Assembly (NCBI RefSeq): GCF_006345805.1
Contig: NC_042998.1
Coordinates: 32,736,001-32,800,000, forward strand
Source of the DNA: Octopus sinensis
Taxonomy: Eukaryota
Length of the DNA stretch: 64,000 nt
Reading direction: 5' to 3'
Both the position numbers and the translations under genes were made by a program. This document shows, piece after piece, positions 3,421-64,000 of the stretch (positions are counted from its first letter, which is position 1; each line of letters opens with the position of its first letter). Under the pieces are notes generated by a model. That model was not told where the DNA came from. It ran no database searches and was given only the letters and a program-made list of their open reading frames with translations.

Positions 3421-3722
3421 ACATAATACTACATATTTGTATTCAGAAAATTCTAAGCTTGAACGGAATTATCTTCAAAATCTGAAGCATTGAGGATAAT
3501 GAGTGAAAAGGGTAAGTGAAGTACAGAATACTCAGGTCCGGAAGAGGAGTAGGAGGAGGAGGCTGATATTAGGTGGAAGAGAAGAAGGCCATAAACTATT
3601 GTTATTATAGAAGAGACAGGGAGTGAAAGCAAGTCTTTTGTGAGCCATCGTTTAGTATATTGATTAATGAGTATTTATCAGTCAATGTTACAATATAAAG
3701 TTTGAAAGGTCTCTGTGCATGC

Positions 3723-4120
3723 AATATAAAGTTTAAAGATTTTAAAGGCCAAACAATGCAAATAGATTTTAAGATGAGGTAACGTAAAAAGTAAGTTACC
3801 TGGTAATCTTTGGTTGTATATGTATCCAATATTTCAGGACATACAAGTCCCTTCTTCAGGGTTAAAAAGGAACTGTCCTAGGAAAGATGTTTTTTGTCAG
3901 AGATAAAATAATACTACTAATAATAATAGAATTATTTTATCCCCAACAAAAAACTTCTTTCCTAGGACAGTTCCTTTTTAACCCTGAAGAAGGGACTTGT
4001 ATGTCCCGAAATATTGGATACATATACAACCAAAGATTACCAGGTAACTTACTTTTTACGTTACCTCATCTTAAAATCTATTTGCATTGTTTGGCCTTTT
4101 AAATCTTTAAACTTTATATT
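3723..4120. repeat. About 190-bp perfect-type inverted repeat (18-bp spacer) with a hammerhead motif in each arm
   Basis: Arms 3723-3912 and 3931-4120 are reverse complements with few mismatches. Spacer is actactaataataataga. Confidence 0.95.
3979..4020 (+). ncRNA. Minimal type-I hammerhead ribozyme motif (Penelope-type)
   Basis: taacc-CTGAAGA-a-gggac-ttgtat-gtccc-GAA-atat-t-ggata: conserved core, 5-bp stem II, palindromic stem III, short stem I. A mirror copy lies on the minus strand at about 3823-3864. Confidence 0.65.
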
Positions 4121-4191
4121 CCATATACAATGCTTCAAGCAAACTATAAAATCTTATATATATATGTTTTTATTATAATTTTGCAATTTAC

Positions 4192-4976
4192 GGATCTTTT
4201 CCTTTTGAATGGCACATGTCAACACAATTTCTAGTTAACTAAACACTTTTAAACTTCGTATACTGGTAGAATGTGTTTATAAAACATCATTTTTTTCTTG
4301 GCTTTATTGAGAAAATTCTATATGTTGTAACATATTTCCACTTTAATTTCAAGCATTTCAGCAATTTTAACCAATCGCTGACCTCCATTTAGGTAAACAA
4401 CATTCCGTGCTGTATGAATATGTCCGCGAAGAAAAAAGATACCCCCCCAACCCTAACTCTAACCCTAAATCTAAAATAGATTGAAATGCAATAGATCGAT
4501 ACTAGGGTTATAATTATGGGTGACACTTTCATTTGTCACCACTAAAAAAAAATCCCATTTTCCGTAGCTGTGTCGTATGAAATAGTCACCCGTAATTATA
4601 ACCCTAGTATCGAACTATTGCATTTCAATCTATTTTAGATTTAGGGTGAGTTAGGGTTAGTTAGGGTTAAGGTTAGGGGTGGGGGAAGGGTATCTTTTTT
4701 TCTTCGCAAATGTGAATAAACCTAATCTGTTTCTTAAACGAGGGACATATTCATACAGCACGGAATGTTTTCACCCCAAATGGAGGTCAGCGATTGGTTA
4801 AAATTGCCGAAATGCTTGAAATTAAAGTGGAAATATGTTACAACATATAGAATTTTCTCAATAAAGCCAAGAAAAAAATGATGTTTTATAAACACATTCT
4901 ACTAGTATACGAAGTTTAAAAGTGTTTAGTTAACTAGAAATTGTGTTGACATGTGCCGTTCAAAAGGAAAAGATCC
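4192..4976. mobile_element. Foldback/MITE-type non-autonomous DNA transposon with very long TIRs, 8-bp TSD and internal telomere-like repeats
   Basis: Termini GGATCTTTTCC...GGAAAAGATCC. Arms 4192-4524 and 4585-4976. Perfect TSD caatttac at 4184-4191 and 4977-4984. Confidence 0.9.
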
Positions 4977-9478: not shown

Positions 9479-9556
9479 CCCACGGACTTATGGTGTAGTA
9501 GCTAAGAGTACGGGATACTAACCCCAAGATTCTGAGTTCGATTCCAGGCAGTGACC

Positions 9557-9590
<34 letters not shown>

Positions 9591-10080
9591 TTTTTTGGAG
9601 ACAACAACAAAATCGTGCCTCCTCATTGATATGACTGTCCCAATCAATATAAACGTATCTGTCAAACCTACCAAAAACTGAGCAAGCATAAAGATCTTGA
9701 AATAGAAATTAACAAAATGTGGAACCGAAGACTAAAACAATGGCTGTTTTCATAGGTGCCCTGGGAATGATAGCAAAAGCAGCTGATTACTACCTAGCTC
9801 AGATACCAGGAAACCTCAAAATGGCAGAAATTCAAAAGATAGTGTTCATGGGAACTGCTCATATCCTACACAAAATACTTTCTAAGTAATCTCAAGTTTT
9901 AAAAGAAACATAATTTTCTTATGCTTTCTTAAACATTCTCTAGAACAACACTAAGTACAAAACCAAATATATGACACCCTAGGCATAACACCAACATGAA
10001 TTCCAACTTGTTGTCTCTTGAGGTCTCTGGGTGAGACTTGGAGCCAACTTGTACAAATGTAAAGCTAAAGTCAAACATAA

Positions 10081-10132
<52 letters not shown>

Positions 10133-10256
10133 TCAAAATATACCTTAGGAACGAGAACCCAGGTTCGAAATTTCCCCAAGACACCCGATGAAGGCTGGAG
10201 GGTATATTAGCCGAAACGTTGAGGACAAATATCCATCAAATGTAAATAATGTAAAC
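9479..10256 (+). mobile_element. SINE-D interrupted in its (AAT)n tract by an RLE-type LINE fragment
   Basis: Head 9479-9557 (A box tggtgtagtag, B box gttcgattcc). Tail 10131-10256 contains the hammerhead-like segment 10181-10221. Confidence 0.85.
9590..10080 (+). pseudogene. 5'-truncated R4/Dong-like non-LTR retrotransposon: restriction-like endonuclease C-terminus plus 3'UTR
   Basis: Frameshifted translation CLLIDMTVPININVSVK-YQKLSKHKDLEIEINKMWN-KTKTMAVFIGALGMIAK...GTAHILHKILSK* (stop at 9887-9889) fits the RLE-clade pattern ID..VP...K..K..KY.DL..E...W...IGALG. Flanked by (AAT)n on both sides. Confidence 0.8.
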
Positions 10257-21867: not shown

Positions 21868-21935
21868 AGTACCAGTTCATTATTTATATTTGGCGGATAT
21901 TTGCCCTCATCTTGTTTGTAGTTAACACAACGTTT
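21868..21935 (-). mobile_element. SINE-D 3' tail fragment
   Basis: Reverse complement aaacgttgtgttaactacaaacaagatgagggcaaatatccgccaaatataaataatg. Confidence 0.7.
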
Positions 21936-21974
21936 AGTCTGCAAGACGCTTATGCTTATGCTACTAACCCCAAG

Positions 21975-22273
21975 ACACTTATGCTGGTGCCACGTACAAG
22001 TACTTGTACAGTGCCACATTAAAGGCATTAGGAAGGGCATCCAGCCATAGAAACCTTGCCAAATCAGACTGGAATCTAGGACAGGTCTCTGGCTTGCCAG
22101 CTCTGGTTAAACCATCCAACCCATGCCAGCATGGAAAATGGATTTTAAATGATGATGATGATGATCATCATCATCATCGTTTAACGTCCGTTCTCCATGC
22201 TAGCATGGGTTGGACGGTTCGACCGGGGATCTGGGAAGCCAGAAGGCTGCACCAGACTCCGGTCTTATCTGGC
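21975..22273. mobile_element. Two RTE-3' copies joined tail-to-tail
   Basis: (GAT)5 at 22151-22165 runs directly into (CAT)4 at 22166-22177. Confidence 0.85.
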
Positions 22274-29222: not shown

Positions 29223-29416
29223 ATTTCGATGGTATCGTTTCAGTTCAGATCTGAGCAGTTCAGACTGGTTATGGCATTACAGCTTCTCTTAGTATACCAT
29301 AAAGTCTATCACAATGTTTTACAGGTGACGTAATTAGTGCTTGTAATTCCACCAGAGTAAATTTCAATATAGGTTTGATATTGTCAGGTATTTAAACTTC
29401 TAAGTTAAATATTCCT

Positions 29417-29634
29417 GTTCTATATTTAAGAGATGTGGAATTATGTACATTATTTACATTATTTACATTTGACGGATATTTGTCCTCATTTTGTTTGTTG
29501 TTAACACAACATTTTGGCTGATATACCCTCCAGCCCACGGCATATGGTGTAGTAGTTAAGAGCACGGGCAACTAACCCGAAGAATTCGAGTTCGATTCCA
29601 GGCAGTGAGCTGAATAATAATAATAATAATAATA

Positions 29635-29682
<48 letters not shown>

Positions 29683-29828
29683 GATTAACATCGAAAAATA
29701 CCTTAGGAATGAGAACCCAGGTTCAAAATTTCCCCAAGACACCTGATGAATCTGGAGGGTATATCAGGCGAAACAATGTGTTAACAACAAACAAGATGAG
29801 AACAAATATCCATCAAATGTAAATAATG
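29417..29828. mobile_element. SINE-D composite: inverted 3' tail (29417-29535, minus) plus full forward copy (29534-29828), 16-bp TSD
   Basis: TSD taagttaaatattcct at 29401-29416 and 29829-29844. Hammerhead-like segment at about 29739-29781. Confidence 0.9.
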
Positions 29829-29899
29829 TAAGTTAAATATTCCTATATATATATATGATCAATAATGTATATATATATAAAATAATCAATATATATATA

Positions 29900-35632: not shown

Positions 35633-37053
35633 AAAATAAAAAGTAAAAGAGTCAAAAGGAAGAGTAAGTATGGTTAGGCAGCTTTTTAATCACTACAAAT
35701 GTTTCGATACATATGTATGTATATATTTGTATGTGTATCTTTTAATACAAAGCAATATTAAGCAAATACATAAAACATGGAAAGACTACACTCACATTTG
35801 GAATATTTCTTGTTGACACCTGTTGATTCTGGAGTGGGGATGCAAATGTATATTCTTAAAATGCCAGGTCTCTTGGTGTTCAGACTTAAATTATGTTCTG
35901 CTTTGAATAGAAAAGTAAAACAGTGAAAAACCAAAAACTGATTATAGGTATGGTATATTTATAAAAAGTTTTTTTTTTTAATATCTGTTGAATCAAACAT
36001 CATAACGTTTGTTTTAATACCTAAGACAACTTTTTTTACAGTAATACTACATCTTGATTTCAAACTAATCTTATGAAATCCGTTCTATTAATATTTCATC
36101 TATTACACTTTATATTCTCCTAAAACTCTTGTATGGCACTTGCTTCAGTGGAAACATTAGGAAAATAGTAACAATCTTTAATCAGATTAAGTAACAAAAT
36201 AAATAATATATAATGTTGAAAAATCTGTTTCCACTCAGTTAACAAACAACATTAGCCCAGCAATAACCTTTGGCAACTCATCCAGAATTTCCTCTACCTT
36301 TATTATATACATCAAGTTTGCAGTCATATAACATAATATTTGATCGTTATTTTTCTTTCTTTCTCATCTTAATTCCATAAACTTCATGCTAACAAGAGCG
36401 AAATGAAAATTAAAAATTTTTTTTTATTTATAGTTTTGAGCTATCAATTACGAGAACTGTCTCAAGAGTGAAAACAAACTTGAAATATGATGAGTTAAAT
36501 AAATAATAATAAAAAAAAACAATATTCCTTCAAGTTTGAAATGATTCCAAATCCTGTTTCTCTTGAGGGATGAAGTTTATGTATCATCATAAAAGCAGAG
36601 TAATGTTACACAAATGAAGAATAAACCATTTATAATTAAACTGCTTATAACAATTTATGATTTAAATTATTTATAATGGATCGAGCTATTTGTAATATTG
36701 ATTTTTTTCCCCCGCTCTTTGTAGACATGACTGAGAACTGTAAAGAAGTTGATATATTTGATGGATTCAAATTATTATTAAGTACTTCTAAATGTAATGT
36801 TGGGGTCGAGAGAAGTAAAGGGGAACTCGAAATATATGAGTGAAACTCTCTCTTGAGAAACTCTCAAGAACAGCAGAAGGTATTCAGAAAAGAAACCCCA
36901 CTCTGGCAAGAATTTTGGCCCATAACTTCTTACACTCTAAAGGGTCTGGGCCACATCTAAGCCATGACCCCTGGGTGTCCTTCTGCTAACAATTTTTAGC
37001 TACTTGGATATGGAAGACATATGCATTTAAACTGCTTGGAATTTCACCGAGTT

Positions 37054-37349
37054 CATTATTTACATTATTTACATTTGACGGATATTTGTCCCCTTCTTGT
37101 TTGTTATTAACACAAGGTTTCAGCTGATATACCTTCTAACCTTCATCAGATGTCTTGGGGAAATTTCGAACCTGGGTTCTCATTCCTAAGGTATTTTTCG
37201 ATTTTATTATTATTATCATTATTATTCATGTCACTGCCTGGAATCGAATTCGGAATCTTGGGGTTAGTGGCTTTTTACATGCATATGGTGTAGTGGTTAA
37301 GAGCGCAGGCTACTAACCCCAAGATTCTGAGTTCGATTCCAGGCAGTGT

Positions 37350-37391
<42 letters not shown>

Positions 37392-37561
37392 CATCAAAAA
37401 ATACCTGAGGAATGAGAACCCAGGTTCGAAATTTCCCCAAGACACCTGATGAAGGCTGGAGGGTATATCAGCTGGAATGTTAACAACAAACAAGATGAGG
37501 GCAAATATCCATCAAATGTAAATAATGTAAATAATTCCTCATCTCTTAAATATAGAACTGT
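37054..37561. mobile_element. SINE-D head-to-head dimer: minus copy 37054-37270 plus forward copy 37281-37561
   Basis: Degenerate 13-bp TSD atttcaccgagtt (37041-37053) and atttcagctagtt (37562-37574), 11/13 identical. Each arm has a hammerhead-like segment. Confidence 0.88.
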
Positions 37562-37959
37562 ATTTCAGCTAGTTGTCACTCTTCTCCATTGACTCAGCTT
37601 CCAAATTTATATATAACGAAGAAATAATGTTGGTTGTCATCGCAGCAACTAAGTTGTGTAGGGTGCATTCCATGTCTTCCAACCCACCACCCTTAAAGTT
37701 ATTCATAGTATTGTTGTTGTGGTTGTTCTGCTTTAGGTCAACCAGGAGTGAATACCTGCATTCTTGCAAGGCATTTTCATCTTCTTAGGGGTGTCTATGA
37801 CTACATTAGCCAATGTGTTCTTTCTTTTTCTAACATGGTGTGAATAGAGACTTCCTCAATGACTTGTTTGTAATGATGTTTAAAAACTTGATGTGAGGAC
37901 ATTGAAAGAAAATAATAGAACCAACTACGTCAATGTTCTAATATTCTGTTGCTTGAAGG

Positions 37960-38587: not shown

Positions 38588-38745
38588 GAGTAAAGATTAT
38601 TTGCCAACATAACATGGCCGTCCTGGTTTAGGATGAATGTTGCTGTAATTTAGCCCCAGGAGACACCGTTTCCAGCTGACTAAATTACAGCAACATTCGT
38701 CCTAAACCAGGACTGCCATGTTATGTTGGCAAACAATCTTTACTC
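38588..38745. repeat. 66-bp inverted repeat with 26-bp spacer
   Basis: Arms 38588-38653 and 38680-38745 are near-perfect reverse complements. Confidence 0.95.
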
Positions 38746-63775: not shown

Positions 63776-63912
63776 GGTGTCTTGGGGAAATTTTGAACCT
63801 GGGTTCTCATTCCTAAGGTATTTTTCAATGTTATTATTATTATTCAGGTCACTGCCTGGAATCGAACTCAGAATCTTGGGGTTAGTAGGCCGTGCCCTTA
63901 ACCACTACACCA
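63776..63912 (-). mobile_element. SINE-D truncated at the start of the hammerhead (after 'ccccaagacacc')
   Basis: Reverse complement: catggtgtagtggttaagggcacggcctactaaccccaagattctgagttcgattccaggcagtgacctgaataat... Confidence 0.88.
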
Positions 63913-64000
63913 TGTAGTACCCGAAGGGCAAAATTGACTTTGTAAAAGGGTTGCAAGAATCAAAAAAATTCTGCAATGCAGCAATAGAACGCTAGCAGCA

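Follow-up and report, generated by a model that had tools for sequence, protein, structure and literature searches.

Head-to-head SINE-D pairs in Octopus sinensis carry the insertion signature of Penelope-like elements and probably record priming from both target strands

In the window analysed here, a 64-kb stretch of the Octopus sinensis genome, two insertions of the SINE-D family (pair A at 29401-29844 and pair B at 37054-37558) each consist of two copies joined head-to-head. Their architecture is a known insertion signature of Penelope-like elements (PLEs), since it matches the published descriptions of PLE insertions (PMC8557442, PMC3846280, PMC11167929). In our judgement, the pairs are probably explained by double-nick priming with PLE machinery. 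As a part of this explanation, SINE-D itself is likely to be an octopus SINE made of a tRNA-like pol III head, (AAT)n, a short linker and one PLE terminal unit of ~130 nt. The coordinates of all features are collected in Table 1.

Pair A is the better preserved of the two. The sequence TAAGTTAAATATTCCT at 29401-29416 returns at 29829-29844 with a 16/16 match, forming a direct repeat that brackets both SINE-D arms; it is the sole exact 16-mer pair in the window at such spacing, and the probability of a 16/16 match is ~1.6e-5 per position. The structure of the arms was read from the alignment with the other SINE-D copies. On the minus strand, the inverted arm (29417-29535) reads as a SINE-D tail from GGCTGGAGGG... 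to ...aataattccacatctcttaaatatagaac, the long terminus (in fuller form, from GGCTGGAGGGTATATCAGCC... to ...AATAATTCCACATCTCTTAAATATAGAAC), and the plus strand of 29534-29828 is a full SINE-D with head, (AAT)n, body and a tail ending in ...caaatgtaaataatg, the short terminus, its last letters being ...CAAATGTAAATAATG. The host junctions on both sides are element 3' ends, the 5' ends meet centrally, and the terminus of the inverted arm is 40 nt longer than that of the forward arm. The two arms form an inverted repeat of 80 nt (29454-29533 and 29752-29831; 90% complementary), and their inner ends lie ~230 nt apart on the element, with a 119-nt arm facing a 295-nt full copy. An initial annotation of this DNA had described the same order, namely TSD, inverted tail with the long end, full forward SINE with the short end and TSD, and both the exact repeat and the alignments of the copies bear it out. 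It had also placed the break of the inverted arm within hammerhead stem II; instead, the arm extends as far as the 5' foot of helix II, with the whole hairpin inside it. The microhomology that it proposed at the inner junction exists as an overlap, but of 2-3 nt (CC or GCC, 29533-35) and not as cagcc/cccac; the junction was placed by means of the SINE 5' end cccacgg, which is also present in copy C at 9479-9485.

Table 1. Positions of the SINE-D features in the 64-kb window
Feature	Position	Strand	Remark
Solo copy C, short terminus	9479..10251	+	(AAT)n interrupted by a 485-bp LINE 3' fragment (9592-10076)
Solo copy D, 5'-truncated tail only, short terminus	21878..21938	-	
Pair A, left TSD copy, 16 bp, TAAGTTAAATATTCCT	29401..29416	.	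Repeat search, 100% identity
Pair A, inverted 5'-truncated SINE-D arm, hammerhead helix II to long terminus	29417..29535	-	3' end abuts left TSD
Pair A, 40-nt 'tail' extension taaataatgtacataattccacatctcttaaatatagaac, missing from forward arm	29417..29456	-	Between the two putative RT start sites
Pair A, inner head-to-head junction	29533..29535	.	2-3 nt (G)CC common to ...ccagcc arm end and SINE 5' end cccacgg...
Pair A, full-length forward SINE-D, terminal unit ending at short terminus ...aaataatg	29534..29828	+	
Pair A, tRNA-like head of forward arm	29534-29612	+	
Pair A, (AAT)n of forward arm	29613-29681	+	
Pair A, decayed PLE-type minimal hammerhead	29738..29785	+	gacac CUGAUGA a ucugg..ucagg c GAAA caau guguu
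Pair A, right TSD copy, 16 bp	29829..29844	.	Repeat search
Pair B, left flank GGAATTTCACCGAGTT, degenerate TSD	37038..37053	.	12/16 vs 37559-74, zero offset
Pair B, inverted arm, near full length, truncated in tRNA-like head	37054..37271	-	Short terminus at 37054
Pair B, 9-nt filler tttttacat at inner junction	37272..37280	.	
Pair B, forward arm, ~7 nt short at 5' end	37281..37558	+	Long terminus ...aaatatagaac (37558)
Pair B, right flank TGTATTTCAGCTAGTT, degenerate TSD	37559..37574	.	
Copy E: head, (AAT)n, body, without hammerhead and tail	63776..63925	-	

Pair B repeats the layout of pair A with the long terminus on the opposite, forward arm, whose outer end reads ...AAATATAGAAC; in each pair, one terminus is thus long and the other short, and the arms that bear them are swapped between the pairs. 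The degenerate flank match of pair B has an empirical P of ~5-8e-4. The arms are separated by 9 nt, and the inner junction (37270-37282) reads GCTTTTTACATGC. Together with the GC on each side, the filler makes up the 13-mer GCTTTTTACRTGC, found at 13 sites in the window where 0.00 are expected. Because the remaining 12 sites all lie within copies of the abundant X2 SINE family, the filler looks like a snippet that was copied from the RNA or DNA of another SINE while the ends were being joined. Within the explanation as a whole, pair B is probably an older product of the same process as pair A, with the long and short roles exchanged.

Three features relate both pairs to PLE insertions. In pair A, the inverted 5'-truncated copy (29417-29535, minus strand) directly adjoins the 5' end of the forward copy (29534-29828, plus strand); a single TSD lies round the whole unit, with 16/16 matches in pair A and 12/16 in pair B in the same register; and the tail is one-sided, being 40 nt on the inverted arm only in pair A and 24-31 nt on the forward arm only in pair B. 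Craig et al. described PLE insertions as often having an inverted 5'-truncated copy beside the 5' end and a tail of 30-40 bp, often at one end only, and the formation of such inverted and tandem insertions is still called undefined there (PMC8557442). The Pen2a_Av insertion of Arkhipova et al. 2013 has an inverted pLTR, a 9-bp TSD round the whole insert, a 31-bp tail on one inverted pLTR and a 15-bp overlap at the junction (PMC3846280). In the work of Frangieh et al. 2024, both strands were nicked and extended by purified Poseidon_Ac protein, and reverse transcription started at two internal sites, the tail being the sequence between them (PMC11167929); our use of the term tail follows this study and PMC8557442. 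Indeed, the initial annotation had regarded inverted terminal duplications as typical of Penelope-like insertions, which agrees with these descriptions (PMC8557442, PMC3846280) and with the homology of the SINE-D tail to a PLE unit.

The likeness extends over the endonuclease-positive PLEs in general (Pen2a_Av of Adineta vaga, Naiad, Penelope and Poseidon), which share with SINE-D the inverted 5'-truncated copy within one TSD, the one-sided tail of 30-40 bp, a short overlap or microhomology at the junction and a minimal hammerhead in the terminal unit. In contrast to canonical PLEs, the forward part of a SINE-D pair is a non-coding element of ~295 bp with a tRNA-like head and not a pLTR-ORF-pLTR, and the pairs are without a direct tandem (pLTR) copy. 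No head-to-tail SINE-D copy, which would be the direct partial tandem of a pseudo-LTR, was found in the window; tandem units of 129 nt do exist in a sister family. The TSD is 16 bp in both SINE-D pairs, whereas 8-10 bp has been reported in the rotifer. Compared with Poseidon_Ac, SINE-D pairs fit the same scheme of two nicked strands, two extended 3' ends and two internal starts, and the distance from the start of helix II to the RT start is ~111-118 nt in Poseidon_Ac against 119 nt (long terminus) or 79 nt (short terminus) in SINE-D; the Poseidon_Ac data come from purified protein on oligonucleotide targets, whereas SINE-D is a genomic fossil only.

The tail of SINE-D connects it to PLEs at the level of protein similarity. 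Its translation is an open frame ending in ...TPDEGWRVYQPKRCVNNKQDEDKYPSNVNNVNNVHNSTSLKYRT, and a word-based search with the tail peptide retrieved an O. bimaculoides protein (P0001) with the long terminus. When 1.84 billion representatives were searched with a profile, 56 short ORFs were retrieved, among which there are two groups. Within the SINE-D-like group, 13 ORFs have alignments ending at profile positions 43-47 (short) and 10 ORFs, with ...KYRT, have alignments ending at 53-55 (long), and this bimodality makes the two discrete termini a property of the family. The long end found at 29417..29456 recurs in the forward copy of pair B (37558), in P0001 and in the 10 ORFs. The second group carries the unit ...TPEEGWRTYRPKRCGNNNKDEDNSPKTLNDKNHQASSQKFRQ, often as 129-nt tandem repeats and often behind a tRNA-like head; a second search, with the alignment, gave 3729 ORF matches. 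In P0058, tandem 129-nt units run in frame into ...LISSRYGPDTIYKWKQLEKLNQKLARMTNHLTFLCRCRD..., the N-terminus of a PLE ORF, which is 31% identical (E 9e-13) to amino acids 8-116 of the Poseidon_Ac ORF, taken from the supplement of PMC11167929. The PLE ORF of P0058 is truncated before the RT, the homology being to the units and the N-terminus. The peptide of the pair A inverted arm matches the P0058 units at 44% over all 39 amino acids (E 8e-10), and the protein similarity to the Poseidon_Ac N-terminus is with the sister (group-2) unit only, not directly with SINE-D. The unit boundary ...KCRQ/LISS aligns with ...SLRQ/HIEH of Poseidon_Ac at ORF nt ~114, which falls inside the RT-initiation window of 111-118 mapped in PMC11167929, and the long terminus of SINE-D aligns there. 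At the P0058 locus (L004), a 78-nt inverted 5'-truncated copy ending at the unit boundary is followed by tandem units and then by the ORF; L004 is a textbook PLE layout with a unit homologous to that of SINE-D. Taken together, these comparisons indicate homology between the SINE-D tail and the terminal unit of a PLE.

No PLE ORF was found among the ORFs of at least 90 aa in the window, nor did the analysis yield a partner PLE from octopus. One frame stays open for 54 codons through hammerhead and tail (29709-29828, and also in the consensus) in AT-rich DNA. That SINE-D codes for something itself was considered and rejected: because the homologous units continue in that frame into the PLE ORF of P0058, the open frame is a relic of the PLE ORF N-terminus. 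Separately, the predicted first exon of the O. bimaculoides dystrobrevin beta isoform X1 (P0002) holds a SINE-D tail fragment, GWRVYQPKCCVNNKQDEDKYPS, which is either an exonised SINE or a gene-model artefact. The sister family, to which the 3729 ORF matches belong (ERZ21867824 and GCA_052426985.1; P0042, P0055, P0063-P0065 and others; L001, L004 and L005), combines the PLE unit with a tRNA-like head whose translation reads MANGIRTGDPRGFNKG..., and 129-nt tandems often follow; it looks like another PLE-dependent SINE with retrozyme-like arrays.

The terminal unit also contains a putative hammerhead of the PLE type. The SINE-D consensus reads gaCAC-CUGAUGA-A-GGCUGG-agggua ua-UCAGCC-GAAA-CG-U-U/GUGUU. 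Measured against the feature list of Cervera and de la Peña for the minimal hammerheads of PLEs (PMC4209133), it has the CUGANGA and GAAA cores, an extra nucleotide after A9 (between 9 and 10.1), the G10.1-C11.1 pair, a long helix II of 6 bp, a short helix I of 5 bp, no loop 3 and a palindromic ACGU (15.2-16.2) that replaces helix III; all of the listed features are present together in the family consensus only. Helices I and II are present in the minimum-free-energy fold of the consensus, whose layout is the same as that of the Poseidon_Ac hammerhead, and CTGATGA..GAAAC occurs in the window in SINE-D copies only. Every copy in the window carries at least one hammerhead lesion and none is intact; across the five decayed copies there are no compensatory changes. 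No hammerhead was matched by Rfam, at gathering thresholds on the whole window or at E<=10 on both pairs, the sole matches being spurious ones of miRNA precursors to the long hairpin. Because Rfam is negative and no copy is intact, we infer the hammerhead at the level of the consensus.

Five SINE-D loci, and no more, were found in the window by blastn and nhmmer: copy C, copy D, pair A, pair B and copy E. Like a tRNA-derived SINE (SINE2), SINE-D is short, non-coding, dispersed in multiple copies and flanked by TSDs, with copies also in O. bimaculoides. In the tRNA-like head, a box A-like TGGTGTAGTAG (29545-55) and a box B-like GAGTTCGATTCC (29588-99) fit the consensus by inspection only; ARAGORN called no tRNA in the head, and Rfam gave no tRNA match at gathering thresholds on the whole window or in E-value mode on both pairs. 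A non-LTR retrozyme consists of tandem repeats, each 170-400 nt long and with its own type I hammerhead; SINE-D differs, since its copies in the window are either scattered one by one or joined as inverted pairs. Exact-pattern scans for the SINE-D body and tail gave 0 matches in metagenome contigs (scanned twice) and in viral contigs.

Two unpaired copies add observations of their own. Copy E ends at ...ccccaagacacc, on the opening C of the CUGAUGA box; the whole PLE unit is missing, and the break point is not the hammerhead cleavage site. The LINE fragment inside copy C (9592-10076) is the 5'-truncated 3' end of 485 bp, with an ORF ending in ...AVFIGALGMIAKAADYYLAQIPGNLKMAEIQKIVFMGTAHILHKILSK and a stop, and with its own terminal (AAT)n. 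This suggests that the LINE targets or primes on (AAT)n, and it is possible that the SINE-D head with (AAT)n was once a separate SINE that depended on this LINE.

Head-to-head pairs account for two of the five SINE-D loci, and for none of the 57 copies of three other SINE families in the window (0/14, 0/19 and 0/24 for abutting pairs; Fisher p ~0.005 for a sample of two pairs in 64 kb). The expectation of the initial annotation that such pairs would be commoner in SINE-D than in other SINEs is therefore upheld within the 64 kb. The nearest case outside SINE-D consists of two X1 copies 224 bp apart, with another SINE in between. As for the remaining close inverted repeats of the window, some belong to MITE or foldback elements, some are microsatellites and some have a different topology. 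At 22105-22224, X2-like SINE arms meet tail-to-tail at (ATG)n/(CAT)n (60 nt, 85% complementary, no spacer), a junction topology opposite to that of the SINE-D pairs. A near-perfect palindrome of 406 bp occupies 3714-4129; next to it, the element 4192-4976 has terminal inverted repeats of 234 bp (97%) and encloses a nested palindrome at 4449-4658, with arms ending in degenerate telomere-like (CCCTAA)n/(TTAGGG)n. There is also a MITE-like hairpin at 38588-38745.

Outside the window, 10 of 161 related ORFs have a reverse-complement unit followed by a forward unit, which is the head-to-head order, and 0 of 161 have the tail-to-tail order; with these counts, head-to-head pairing is general for this PLE unit. 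A third SINE-D-like head-to-head pair, L002, lies at 715-1007 of Logan SRR11869385, and the same ORF is present in SRR11869394. Both of its arms end in the long terminus without a recognisable TSD, its inner ends nearly coincide round a small hairpin (ctcag...ctgag), and the arms are strongly diverged with indels.

We propose that a SINE-D pair would form in the following way. The terminal unit of the RNA would contain, in order, the minimal hammerhead, ~80 nt up to a first RT start and ~40 nt more up to a second. The RT and GIY-YIG endonuclease of a PLE, probably a dimer, would nick the target strands 16 bp apart, and each 3'-OH would then prime reverse transcription of SINE-D RNA. The bottom-strand primer would start at the short site and copy the whole RNA, giving the forward arm, and the top-strand primer would start at the long site and stop past hammerhead helix II, giving the inverted arm. 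The cDNA 3' ends would meet head-to-head and be joined through 2-3 nt of microhomology in pair A and through the 9-nt filler in pair B, and fill-in of the 16-nt overhangs would produce the TSD. That both primings took place in one event, the mode of joining the cDNAs and the choice of the autonomous PLE that supplied the protein are the parts that we infer. Priming from both nicks, as the initial annotation had suggested, gains support from the extension of both strands by Poseidon_Ac (PMC11167929) and from the long and short starts in both pairs; its reading as one insertion event is likewise supported by the one TSD round both arms and by pair B, which has the same architecture and a 12/16 repeat.

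It could be argued instead that each pair arose from two independent insertions, a truncated SINE-D arriving first and a full copy later homing to its inner end. In favour of this, recognition of its own tail sequence has been reported for the PLE endonuclease, PLEs build up tandem and nested arrays when they insert beside their own copies, and the arms of a pair, at ~10% divergence, show no specific relationship to each other. Against this, one TSD lies round both arms, with neither a further TSD copy inside nor a second duplication, the same clean architecture appears again at 37038-37574, and the second insertion must have hit the truncated end exactly, leaving no TSD, and have done so twice; we regard such a history as unlikely. 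The two arms of a pair are 88-91% similar and no closer to each other than to other copies, and thus give no sign of a shared template or insertion time; in a comparison of diagnostic variants between the arms, the differences were mostly CpG decay. A paralogous empty site was looked for by searching the joined flanks in the window, where the flanks are unique at the junction, and a search for the same locus or its empty site through three flanking or spanning ORFs found no record. A second route to an inverted arm is self-priming, in which the cDNA folds back or an antisense template primes itself, as favoured by Arkhipova et al. 2013 with palindromes at the inverted junctions (PMC3846280). 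Inner ends that nearly coincide are indeed found elsewhere, at 6040-6060 of L004, in P0007 and P0020, which are joined within helix II, and in L002, and for these near-palindromic junctions self-priming is at least as good an explanation as double priming. In both pairs of the window, by contrast, one arm has a tail of 24-40 nt that its partner lacks, and pair A is asymmetric in arm length, with widely spaced inner ends. Because the two arms of each pair start at different sites, one long and one short, the arms are not copies of each other; neither was templated by the other, and snap-back therefore fails for these two pairs, for which we rate it as quite improbable. The near-palindromic junctions elsewhere mean that the family may form inverted pairs by more than one route, and self-priming may operate in it as well.

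A LINE-driven event of the twin-priming type, with RTE, CR1 or Dong-R4 machinery and no PLE, is suggested by the wealth of LINEs and LINE-dependent SINEs in octopus genomes. In L1 twin priming, as reportedly described by Ostertag and Kazazian in 2001, an inversion arises within a single TSD and shows microhomology at its junction, and the SINE-D pairs resemble it in these respects and in the second priming from the top-strand nick. However, twin priming starts at an internal site of the same RNA, so that an internal segment is inverted and the 3' end stays single, whereas both SINE-D arms begin at the 3' end and this region is present twice. The initial annotation had made this distinction, and it is confirmed by at least 78 nt of the same 3' sequence in both arms of pair A. 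In addition, the SINE-D tail is homologous to the PLE unit and not to a LINE 3' end, two discrete termini with a one-sided tail are PLE-specific, and no other SINE family of the window forms such pairs; a LINE origin is thus very unlikely. An assembly artefact, or an inverted duplication at the DNA level without retrotransposition, deserves mention because inverted repeats are prone to mis-assembly, and PLE structures in particular have assembly problems (PMC8557442). Nevertheless, the arms are of unequal length and mismatched at 10% of positions, the outer ends lie exactly at element termini, there is a TSD, the same structure is seen again with other breakpoints, and a related pair was found in two independent read sets (L002 and L003). 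We find this explanation barely credible, and double-nick priming by PLE machinery accounts for the pairs best.

Non-coding or foreign cargo is known from other PLE passengers, among them the non-LTR retrozymes, MRC1 and other non-autonomous Chlamys elements, and host genes captured between pLTRs; such cargo moves by way of a terminal unit of the PLE type or a repeat that bears a hammerhead. SINE-D differs from the retrozymes, whose tandem repeats are thought to pass through circular RNA, and from MRC1 and the captured genes, which are without a pol III head. The SINE-like Sm-alpha element of Schistosoma bears a hammerhead as SINE-D does, but a canonical and not a minimal one, and no report of PLE-type pairs or tails for Sm-alpha was found in the literature examined. 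Many ORFs of the sister family likewise have a tRNA-like head fused to the same PLE unit. Considering these elements together, we tentatively suggest, as a reading that we do not yet favour, that tRNA-promoter SINEs (SINE-D and the sister family) parasitise PLEs, and that their insertions record two-nick priming with a fixed stagger of 16 bp and an independent choice of start site. No description of a tRNA-headed SINE that depends on a PLE was found in the open literature (Repbase and subscription journals lay outside the search), and a tRNA-headed octopus SINE family with a PLE terminal unit and the PLE insertion signature may be new.

Currently, an in vitro study of a lizard element is the only biochemical evidence on how PLEs build such insertions. 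SINE pairs of ~300 bp offer a complementary record, as both 3' ends, the 5' stops, the joint and the TSD can be read in a few hundred bases, and SINE-D pairs collected genome-wide could discriminate between double priming and self-priming, measure the stagger of the nicks and test whether the start sites are chosen independently. If the parasite reading is true, it would settle the in vivo origin of PLE inverted repeats, a part of the octopus 'unclassified SINE' fraction would become PLE-dependent, and the reading would account for some of the dispersed minimal hammerheads, of which thousands have been reported from animal genomes.
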